Assembly: GCA_038496445.1 (NCBI GenBank)
Contig: JALMLS010000311.1
Location: 62,001-126,000, forward strand
Reading direction: 5' to 3'
DNA from: Trichosphaerium sp. ATCC 40318
Lineage: Eukaryota > Protista > Tubulinea
Length of the DNA: 64,000 bases
Both the position numbers and the translations under genes were made by a program. Below, one piece after another: positions 6,685 through 55,326 of this stretch. Numbering within the stretch: position 1 is the stretch's first letter; the number at the start of each line of letters is the position of its first letter. A model generated the notes under the pieces. The model did not search any database. It had not been told where the DNA came from and saw only the letters and a program-made list of their open reading frames with translations.

Positions 6685-7386
6685 TCACATTGTTACACAT
6701 TTATTTGATTTGGCAGGTTTGACACTTCCAGTGTTTCTGTGGATTTGGGAATTATTACTTAAAACGTAATGACCTTGATTAATCACTTTCCAGTCAGTAG
6801 TATACACTTTGTATGCTTTTTTCTCACCACTGACAAAGAGTACTTCTTCTATTGTTCTAGCAAGAAACCATCTACATAACCCTTCCTTTTTCCCATTGAC
6901 ATAGACAGATTCTTCTCGCATATATTGTCCTTCCCTAGCCCACCACTTATAAACTCCTTCTTTCTTCCCATTCACATAAGTACAAGAGTCCAACTGTTGT
7001 CCATCGGAGTACCATGATTCTTGTTCTCCTTCTTTCAATCCATTAACATAGAACCGTTTTTCCATCAATTGACCATCATTGTACCAAAGCCTATACTCCC
7101 CTTGTCGTACACTGTGAACATAACTACATTGTAAATTCAATGCTCCAGTCTTAGTATCATACTTTTTCTCCTCGCCATGCAACACACCATTTTTCCAATT
7201 TGTATGCCAAATAACAGTCTTGCCACGTGATATCCACTTACCATGTTTCTTTAGGTCAGAATCGAAGCGTGAGTGTGTCGCTGCTTTTTTAGATAATAGT
7301 GGCCACAAAACGTACAATTCGTAGCTTAGATCCGTAATATCAAGTTGTAACTCGCATGGGAGGTCTAACAACCCAATATGCTCCAT
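6685..7386 (-). CDS. Intronless protein with an F-box-like N-terminus and MORN-variant (YwqK-like) repeats
   Basis: LLDLPCELQLDI at the N-terminus and about 5 repeats of YVNGxKEGxxxxWYxDGQ. Likely ATG at 7386. Confidence 0.8.
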   Translation of the reverse strand: MEHIGLLDLPCELQLDITDLSYELYVLWPLLSKKAATHSRFDSDLKKHGKWISRGKTVIWHTNWKNGVLHGEEKKYDTKTGALNLQCSYVHSVRQGEYRLWYNDGQLMEKRFYVNGLKEGEQESWYSDGQQLDSCTYVNGKKEGVYKWWAREGQYMREESVYVNGKKEGLCRWFLARTIEEVLFVSGEKKAYKVYTTDWKVINQGHYVLSNNSQIHRNTGSVKPAKSNKCVTM

Positions 7387-7639
7387 TGTTGGTCCAGTGT
7401 GGTTTGAGCAGACGTGCGTTATTGTATTCGAGGTTACGTTGCGTACTGAACCGTTAATGAATAGTGTTTTGGTGAACGTACAGTCTTTGTTATTCAATTT
7501 ATCACTAAATGACCTTGTCCTTAACCATTACTCTGTATTGAATTATAAGAGTTGGATATACTATGGCGCTGATACAATCTGTTTATTATTATGGTACAAA
7601 AAAGGAAGAAAGGCTAGAAGTCTAACTTGTTTTCGAACT

Positions 7640-23593: not shown

Positions 23594-23872
23594 ATGAAGC
23601 ACACCAAAGAAGAACGAACTTTTTGTGGGGATAGGTGGGACACTTGCCCTAACAAAAAATACGACGACGTACGCTTGGATAGCATTGGTTTGTGTTCACT
23701 GTTGGTCTTACTCCAAGTAGCATGATAAAGTAGCAAGTTCGAAAAAATGTAAACGTTGTAATAAGCGAACTCACGGGGTAAGAAATGCAATCACTATGTT
23801 GGCACCCTTCGAGTTGAAGGCTACCCCGACGTCTCAAAATACGAGTGTAGTGATATTCGCACTAAATCGTGA
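23594..23872 (+). pseudogene. Frameshifted paralog of the secreted Cys-rich peptide gene at 53424-53811
   Basis: Same 52-nt intron and a 79-nt identical tract. It has a 1-nt deletion near 23776 and no intact signal peptide. Confidence 0.75.
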
Positions 23873-52830: not shown

Positions 52831-53423
52831 CTTGCACTTGATATCAGAAGTCTACCTTAAGTCAATGTAGAATGAGCTCTTTTACATTGTCAACAAAGGT
52901 CACTGCCGTTTAATGAAAGTAGTAAACAGTCAACTGGCTGCATAGTACCAAACTGACTATTAGTTCGACAAGAAGCCGCCCAAGGGCCTGAAGGCAACTG
53001 CTTTAAGCCAGACTCCAATGGACTCCGAGAACAATACTGAAGGGACGTGCCACTCAAATAGAATAGAGTAGAGTAGTAATCTTTATTACGCATTGCTAAA
53101 ATACAGTACAGTAATCGCCTAGATAAGCTTGAACCATGGAAACAGAGTGGCCACGCTCAAGTGCAATTAATAGCTGAAAACTGTTTCACTTTTTCAAGCA
53201 CGTAAAGTACTTGCACGTGATCACGAATGATTGGAACTTAGAACAGAGGATAGGCAACAATATACCGTAGAAAAAACCCTTCGCCTTTAAAATGCGCTGA
53301 TCGGGTACGACACAGGCGGTTCACCAACCGGATAATCTGTGAACATCACTCCAGTAATACTTCACAACATCGGACGTATAGATGTGAATTATGTGAGTCT
53401 TGTTTACCCTATACTCAAACGAA

Positions 53424-53811
53424 ATGCAGCTCTTCTACTCACCACCAATTTATACTCTCACCATCACCTATTTACTTTTAATGTTCGTATGCCCTGCAGC
53501 TAGTTCTGAAGACGAGGCGGAGGCATCTTGTAAAGGAAAATGGTGTTCAAGATTGTACTCCAGAGACGAACAGACTTTTTGTGGGGATAGGTGGGGCACT
53601 TGCCCTGACAGAAACTACGATGAAGTACGCTTGGATAGTATTTGATTATGTTCACTGTTGGTCTTACTCCAAGTAGCATGATAAAGTAGCAAGTTCGAAA
53701 AAATGTAAACGTTGTAATAAGCGAACTTACGAGGGTAAGAAATGCAATCATCATATTGGCACCTTTCGCATAAACGGCGTTCATGACGTCACAAAATACG
53801 AGTGTAAATAA
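53424..53811 (+). CDS. Secreted small cysteine-rich peptide precursor (111 aa, 2 exons)
   Basis: Signal peptide, SSEDEAEA spacer and a 77-aa region with 8 Cys. Intron 53625-53676. A paralog lies at 23.6 kb. Confidence 0.75.
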
Positions 53812-54035: not shown

Positions 54036-55326
54036 TTACTCTGACGTTTCAGCGTTTCTACTATAACACTCGATGTACATGTCAAATTTGGACAATGCAA
54101 ATTTGAATATAGTGCTAGGAGTTATATTGATATTATCTGGAAGTTCGTCCTGATCAACTTCATCTCCAACTACATAGTTGAAAGCATTACATATAATTTG
54201 AGGGTGGTATCCATGACTTGCTACAAAAAAAAACGTGTCAGGCGTTAACTAACAACAATCAATTCATACCAATTATCATGGAAAGATCTCCTAACTGAAC
54301 CATAGCTATAGTATAAGGCTCATCCTCATCATCAAACAATGCGATCTTGCTTTTAGTAATAGTGTCTTCAAAACAGAACAGACGTTTACTTGTTGATTCC
54401 TTGTCATATGCAATGACCCTTTCTTTCCATCCGTTCACCCTTGAAAACTTGGTTTTAATAGTCTCAATAAACCTATCTATTTGCTCTTGAGGATGGTTAT
54501 GCCATTCATCTTCAGCGTAGTGTGGCATAGTATTTCCTCTAAATCCATCTAAAAACTCTTCAATGTCGGGTTCCTCTGAAGCAAAGAGATCAAGGATGTG
54601 TTCCCAATCTAACGCAAAGCACGAAAAGGGTGCTTGATGGTCGAGAAGCGGAAGCATTGAGGGATACAATGTTTGATGAGTATTAAACATTGTCGTCAAA
54701 ATTGTTTTCGCGTCTTCTTTTGGCATTGTCAGGAGTTTCTCAATGACATTATCGCGTGTTGGGTACTCATAATCCTCGTTAGGTATTTCCATGGGTTGGG
54801 AAGTGTCTTCGTATGCAACACTACCAAGAGGTGATTGTTAGCAACGTCAGCCTAAGGCGTAGCGAAAAAAGCGTACAAGGCGCCCTCCTTCGCGCCTCGG
54901 TTATGAGATGTTGTTTGAATAAATATTTGGAAATCAGGAAATAGTTCAGGATTCAGAGACGCCCTAGGTTTCGATTCGATACGAAGTAAGCATCTCGCGC
55001 CAAAACCTCGGTAACAACTACCACTTGTAAAAACCAATACAAGCTTTTTCCCGCTGAGAAGAGCTGTCAGTATGCAAAAATGCTATTAATGCACTTACGT
55101 AATGATTTCTGTCTTTGAGAGTTGGTAGAAACAATTTGGTTTAGCTCCAGTATACTAAATCAGTTATTATTAAACTACTCCTCAAGGTTGTACTCACGTG
55201 TTTTAGCACTACGTTTTTTATCGTGCTATCCTGTCTTACAAGAATACGCGGGAACCGTTCTGGATTGACAGGCCCCATCTCAGCTTTTTGGGCTGGAGTG
55301 TCCTTTACGCCTTTTCTCCTTGGCAT
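54036..55326 (-). CDS. Hypothetical two-domain protein
   Basis: Exons splice in frame. N-domain FYQLSKTEII..GFGARCLL..FIQTTSHNR, acidic C-domain. Confidence 0.6.

Follow-up and report, generated by a model that had tools for sequence, protein, structure and literature searches.

An intact but divergent gene from a lineage-restricted family of small cysteine-rich, predicted secreted proteins in the marine amoeba Trichosphaerium

What kind of gene encodes a small protein with a hydrophobic leader, a short acidic stretch and eight closely spaced cysteines in the genome of Trichosphaerium, how is its product processed, and what might that product do? The question is raised by a locus in the 64,000-nucleotide stretch of genomic DNA that was analysed here as a whole (the window), where a sequence-only reading had proposed, as a candidate antimicrobial, toxin or pheromone, a secreted, disulfide-bonded effector whose acidic spacer is trimmed away two residues at a time. 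The gene, referred to below as the window gene, occupies positions 53424-53811 of the + strand, and its coordinates and translation could be confirmed as exact. The ATG at 53424 is the first one downstream of an in-frame stop; exon 1 (53424-53624) comprises 67 codons and exon 2 (53677-53811) 44 codons plus TAA, separated by a phase-0 intron of 52 nt (53625-53676, + strand), which follows the GT..AG rule and reads GTACGC...TTACTCCAAGTAG. If the intron is read through unspliced, a stop is met after 81 residues.

The spliced product consists of 111 residues with nine cysteines, one in the leader and eight within the last 77 residues, in the spacing C-x4-C-x11-C-x6-C-x16-C-x2-C-x9-C-x19-C. Codons 1-27 (53424-53504, + strand) encode a hydrophobic leader, a predicted signal peptide with a likely cut after A-A-S; its best 12-residue Kyte-Doolittle mean is 2.4, within the range of 2.4-3.2 found across the copies described below, small residues occupy positions -3 and -1 (A-A-S in the window gene, V-S-G elsewhere), and the n-region carries no basic residue. 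The acidic tract S-E-D-E-A-E-A follows (codons 28-34, 53505-53525, + strand, charge -4) and is succeeded, in the remainder of exon 1 (53526-53624, + strand), by the first half of the cysteine domain, which holds C1-C4 and the motifs GKWCSRLY and FCGDRWGTCP. The basic second half, with C5-C8 in the arrangement CKRCNKRT...KCN...KYECK and a charge of +8, is encoded by exon 2 (53677-53811, + strand), TAA included. The outline given by the sequence-only reading, namely two exons around a 52-nt GT-AG intron, a leader with signal-peptide features, and an acidic tract followed by a 77-residue eight-cysteine part with a basic C-terminal half, is thus borne out by the coordinates, the translation and the charges, and for the leader also by its hydrophobic stretch, the small -3/-1 residues and the homologous leaders in all paralogues. 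Among the other open reading frames of the window, one of 177 residues (54259-54792, - strand) is convergent with the gene and scores nothing above threshold in Pfam, where DUF5415 stays short of the cut-off at E 0.0017, and another (6685-7497, - strand) matches the MORN repeat variant (PF07661, E 1.3e-07).

The suggestion that the genome be searched for a family proved fruitful, as the window gene turned out to be a divergent copy within a family that numbers ~50 loci. An exon-by-exon search of the 70.3-Mb genome (642 contigs) returned 51 matches to exon 1 and 50 to exon 2, paired at constant spacing, and from the fetched loci 38 clean two-exon models could be built, which encode 32 distinct proteins of ~111-115 residues. 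All 38 models have a phase-0 intron of 46-61 nt at the identical codon, with the donor GTACG[TC] and usually the acceptor TAG, and the window gene shares this arrangement: its one phase-0 intron sits at that codon, and its donor reads GTACGC. The roughly 50 matches to either exon and the 38 models that share intron position, phase and donor take the window gene far beyond chance.

The family is further defined by its cysteine frame, C-x4-C-x11-14-C-x6-C-x16-C-x2-3-C-x9-C-x15-19-C, in which the commonest gaps are 4, 14, 6, 16, 3, 9 and 19; the window gene, with 4, 11, 6, 16, 2, 9 and 19, fits this frame. The consensus leader (..LSLAILFVVFMFACPVSG) is followed by the tract N-D-E-E-V/E-E-A, the exon-1 domain C.GKWCSRLY...GTFCADRWGSCP...Y and the exon-2 domain ..I.GKKNCGKRCNQRTPSAGRCN...G.M......RY.C, and the columns C, W, C, S, L, Y, C, D, G, C, P and Y are invariant in exon 1. 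Each of the core motifs, GKWCS[RK]LY, [FY]C..xWG[ST]CP, C-x2-3-C-N-[KQ]-R and the terminal [RK]-[YF]-x-C, is present in the window gene, which has an intact frame, all eight cysteines and the full set of invariant core residues, with the two splice sites likewise intact. Pairwise identity within the family ranges from 39 to 99%.

Several copies are broken, and the family has outlying branches. Three distinct intronless relatives (L054:950-1297, L056:995-1339 and L057:992-1360, on C106, C29 and C111/C403, respectively) encode 115-123 residues with ten cysteines; they lack the acidic tract, have the second family cysteine replaced and carry three extra ones. In protein sequence they are only ~33% identical, yet they still lie behind a 25-nt promoter box of the family (see below), which makes simple retroposition an unlikely origin. 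A divergent subfamily of four loci (L062, L039, L040 and L061, three of them on C98 and one on C421) has an extra stretch that interrupts exon 1, possibly a second intron. At L036 (C68:42665 region) the intron donor is apparently GC in place of GT, both exons being open, so that this locus may have a GC-AG intron or be a dead copy. Identical gene copies recur at contig ends and on small contigs (C281, C565, C466, C344, C375, C378, C319, C403 and C421); these are probably uncollapsed haplotigs or assembly redundancy, and as such duplicates inflate the copy counts, the true number of loci should be somewhat below 50. Nucleotide similarity between loci stops ~100-150 nt upstream and ~10 nt downstream of the coding region, from which it follows that the duplicated unit is the bare gene of ~550 nt; dispersal on a transposon finds no support in these limits. 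An internal duplication of a four-cysteine module, exon 1 against exon 2, was likewise considered and rejected (hhalign probability 0.3%).

That at least one member of the family is expressed follows from a protein, P0001, which is the complete open reading frame of an MMETSP transcript and the best match to the family profile (E 8e-42). It reproduces letter for letter the joined exon-1 and exon-2 peptides of paralogue L013 (69+43=112 residues), which shows that L013 is transcribed and that its splicing takes place where the model puts the junction. For the splice junction, which the sequence-only reading had wished to see in RNA, the outcome is accordingly divided: the homologous junction is confirmed in a paralogue, and no transcript-derived protein matches the window gene itself (in the public collection a word-index search with exon 1 returned nothing, and one with the family alignment returned only P0001). 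The MMETSP sampling included Trichosphaerium; it recovered just one of ~40 paralogues, and for this reason the absence of the window gene there says little.

Relatives outside the genome were sought with the window gene, taken exon by exon, and with P0001 and the intronless L054, L056 and L057 as full-length proxies. The family profile, run against 1.84 billion representative proteins, gave four matches. Besides P0001 these were P0002, a bacterial protein of 1602 residues with Ig repeats, whose match is limited to CVEVYGSC and which was discarded as spurious, P0003, and P0004, a protein of 112 residues with 31% identity to P0001. P0003 and P0004 both stem from Logan/ENA contigs, and neither is encoded by the Trichosphaerium genome searched; going by sequence, they look like the sole relatives outside this genome, distant and unnamed. 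The ESM Atlas gave nothing usable, and viral contigs and JGI metagenome contigs gave no match. At permissive E-values Pfam yielded nothing better than E 0.06, far below the cut-offs, for both exons, the three intronless relatives, P0001, P0003 and P0004, and none of the named cysteine-rich domains (defensins, knottins, hevein/CBM18, Kazal, saposin-like amoebapores, ShK and others) came near its gathering score. Among PDB sequences, phmmer and hmmsearch returned only noise, with a best E of 0.49 and, for example, three-finger toxins at E 0.5-1.2.

The AlphaFold2 models of L054 (pLDDT 75, pTM 0.62) and P0001 (pLDDT 74, pTM 0.53) each contain a helix in the leader and a pair of beta-hairpins. With Foldseek no match at E <=0.001 was obtained (best E 0.57), and two wide searches with VIA-align over 48,161 chains ended at best Z values of 2.9 and 3.0, the noise level of the aligner; as the search relied on relatives' models of pLDDT ~74-75, a fold may possibly have been missed. 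Structure prediction with Foldseek, as the sequence-only reading had recommended, thus matched no known non-effector domain, and its remark that it recognised the cysteine spacing from no named family agrees with the outcome for Pfam, PDB sequences, Foldseek and VIA-align. The top row for L054 was the leech carboxypeptidase inhibitor, an eight-cysteine mini-protein (PDB 1dtv; Z 2.9, rmsd 3.4 over 60 residues, 8% identity). This row is not significant: its score is at noise level, it is absent for the P0001 model, and there is no sequence similarity. It touches on the idea that the proteins are small disulfide-rich protease inhibitors with variable reactive loops, or signalling peptides of the life cycle or of mating, an idea with which their small size, predicted export, predicted disulfide richness and variable loops would agree. 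A sequence match to an inhibitor or pheromone family was not found, Z values of 2.9-3.0 are what the aligner returns as noise, and ~30 distinct co-regulated copies are many for a signal, so that either role is considered very unlikely.

A special feature of the window gene is the sequence E-A-E-A just past the leader. X-Ala trimming is established for yeast alpha-factor and promelittin, and by analogy the sequence-only reading had taken E-A-E-A as a pro-spacer that an X-Ala dipeptidyl aminopeptidase removes, releasing a peptide that starts with SCKGKW. The motif is literally present, and in this the window gene alone resembles the two precursors. Across the family the tract reads [NH]-[DN]-E-E-[VEA]-E-[AS], with variants such as N-D-E-E-V-E-A and N-D-E-E-E-E-A, and E-E-E-E-E-A-Q-T in the nearest paralogue; the E-A-E-A periodicity is confined to the window gene, 27 of the 28 aligned paralogues being without an X-Ala register, and the tract as such is missing from the three intronless relatives and from the distant P0004. 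Moreover, the likeliest leader cut (A-A-S/S) would yield the dipeptides S-E, D-E, A-E and A-S, out of register for an X-Ala enzyme. The proposed trimming is hence not upheld as a trait of the family, and for the window gene it appears highly improbable.

What the family does conserve is the split of charge: the tract carries -4 to -5 and the exon-2 part +7 to +10, with a net charge of +1 to +6. In this respect the proteins resemble defensin-type precursors, in which an anionic segment balances a cationic mature peptide; they differ from these in that the tract comprises only 6-7 residues, abuts the first cysteine without a basic cleavage site and is missing in some relatives, and no motif or fold match to defensins was obtained for the amoeba family. 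The charge split could also point elsewhere. The envelope of Trichosphaerium is leathery, and one stage of the amoeba bears spicules (PMC5850466); the products could be structural or surface proteins of the envelope or of the calcareous spicule stage, whose acidic tract would bind calcium and whose basic half would bind acidic polysaccharide; the many co-regulated copies suggest bulk production, which would suit such a role. Against this, the tract is no longer than 6-7 residues and neither the intronless relatives nor P0004 have it, the repetitive or low-complexity sequence usual in matrix proteins is lacking, and fast-changing loops, as described next, are unexpected in a building block. A structural role is for these reasons judged improbable.

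The pattern of selection distinguishes a scaffold from the segments it holds. Family-wide, dN/dS is ~0.32; it falls to 0.06-0.18 in the four core segments (0.06-0.14 in the exon-1 core and 0.18 in the exon-2 core), the short C-terminal segment excepted (0.42), and amounts to 0.4-0.6 in three loops, the loop between C7 and C8 being variable. The cores are under purifying selection, and loop dN/dS does not exceed 1. When only the closer pairs are compared, values of 0.84-1.01 are found in the loops and 0.41 in the core; loop pS is raised as well, with synonymous divergence doubled, and these raised loop values may be due in part to misalignment or to gene conversion in the cores.

Within the family, the window gene (C123) groups only with L002 (C251), its nearest intact paralogue, at 70% identity; towards the two main clades its identity is 39-49% (distances computed per exon and then summed). 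Its clade numbers six copies, four of which are broken or doubtful: next to the intact window gene and L002 there are a copy on C89 whose frame shifts shortly before exon 1 ends, one on C4 that is doubtful, one on C143 that contains stops, and a decayed twin in the same window (23600-23848, + strand, corresponding to C123:85600-85848). The twin is 87% identical to the window gene over 250 nt. Missing from it are the leader and ~45 codons at the start, one nucleotide has been deleted from the part that corresponds to exon 2, and the intron survives almost unchanged.

The flanks of the family genes hold a second conserved element. The 25-nt box AAATCGGGnnTnnATCGGAnAAACT occurs at 54 sites in the genome, compared with none for a reversed control, and 41 of the 54 precede family genes in the same orientation, at a distance of 55-109 nt, those of the distant intronless relatives included; at L013 it is found ~86 nt 5' of the ATG. 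Since it is kept at intronless relatives that are only ~33% identical in protein, the box has changed less than the coding sequence; on sequence grounds it is a candidate transcription-factor site. The 13 sites that lie beside no listed copy (L068-L078; e.g. C114:148688 and C8:33578) are for the most part without an open reading frame of >=40 residues behind them, and two of these orphans (C235:61904 and C282:470) precede a decayed family leader. The orphan sites are probably relics, and a regulon that reaches beyond the family was rejected on the same observations. Downstream, most copies have AATAAA ~80 nt past the stop.

Within two mismatches, the full box was not found at the window gene or in its clade; upstream alignment located a degenerate remnant, ACCGGATAATCT, which represents the second half only and lies ~86-97 nt before the ATG (53327-53338, + strand). 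The box being a regulatory feature, its absence leaves membership of the protein family standing, and it makes co-regulation of the window gene with the family doubtful. A canonical AATAAA is absent downstream of the window gene, and its clade is likewise without one. One may therefore ask whether the window gene is a silent or decaying copy, its frame open because disabling mutations have yet to accrue, with other paralogues doing the work. Along with the missing box and polyadenylation signal, the truncated twin, the copy with stops and the frameshifted copy in the clade would agree with this, as would the lack of a match among the transcript-derived proteins of the public collection and the identities to L002, which are similar in the exons (86% and 78%) and the intron (83%), the exons being no better conserved. 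Against it stand the intact frame, cysteines, invariant core residues and splice sites, a dN/dS of 0.44 relative to L002 (20.5 synonymous changes per 66 sites and 41.5 non-synonymous per 264), and the conservation of ~100-150 nt upstream with L002, L003 and L004, the second half of the box included; the recovery of a single paralogue out of ~40 by MMETSP makes the missing transcript a weak argument. Silence or decay is regarded as unlikely.

The reading that is preferred here, with a probability only a little better than even (roughly 0.55), is that the window gene, though divergent, is an intact copy from a family of ~50 loci restricted to this marine amoeba lineage, whose products are extracellular binders in defence or prey handling. 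A family gene is a compact unit of ~550 nt, made up of a short promoter, exon 1, a single phase-0 intron and exon 2. Its leader of ~27 residues would send the product to the endoplasmic reticulum and be cut after A-A-S in the window gene or V-S-G in most copies. The remaining protein of ~84 residues would consist of a short acidic N-terminal tract and the eight-cysteine domain with its strongly basic C-terminal half, in which probably four disulfides form around the two beta-hairpins, so that a conserved scaffold would present three loops that vary between copies. As an extracellular set of binding molecules, the proteins would most likely serve antimicrobial defence or the handling of prey. 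A binding role outside the cell, in defence or feeding, is favoured because the scaffold is conserved and the loops change fast, because one half of the protein is cationic, and because the family is multi-copy and co-regulated; the net charge of only +1 to +6 is weak for a classical cationic antimicrobial peptide.

Free-living amoebae graze on microbes and compete with them, and to our knowledge little has been described of their secreted effector peptides, saposin-like pore formers aside. Lineage-restricted families of secreted cysteine-rich proteins are documented in the NCR peptides of legumes (PMC7230169) and the SCRiPs of corals (PMC2652719). The amoeba family resembles both in combining a signal peptide (predicted here) with a small mature part that is presumably disulfide-rich, and in having tens of copies in one lineage, a conserved cysteine scaffold with variable residues in between, and no outside relatives. 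It differs from both in its cysteine spacing and in the longer mature part (~84 residues), and no relation in sequence or fold to either was found.

A bolder version, which is tentative and on balance unlikely, holds that the family represents a new disulfide-rich fold and a diversified, co-regulated repertoire of extracellular binders under its own 25-nt box, from which the clade of the window gene has escaped to be regulated differently. If true, this would be a protist counterpart of the defence-peptide arsenals of animals and plants. By itself the window gene is a rather atypical and possibly silent copy, and the finding is a useful annotation. Taken as a whole, the family, for which the collections searched hold no named relatives, comes with a splice structure, a scaffold, variable loops, a candidate regulatory box and one transcript-confirmed member, which together provide concrete starting points for work on expression, the secretome and activity in Trichosphaerium.
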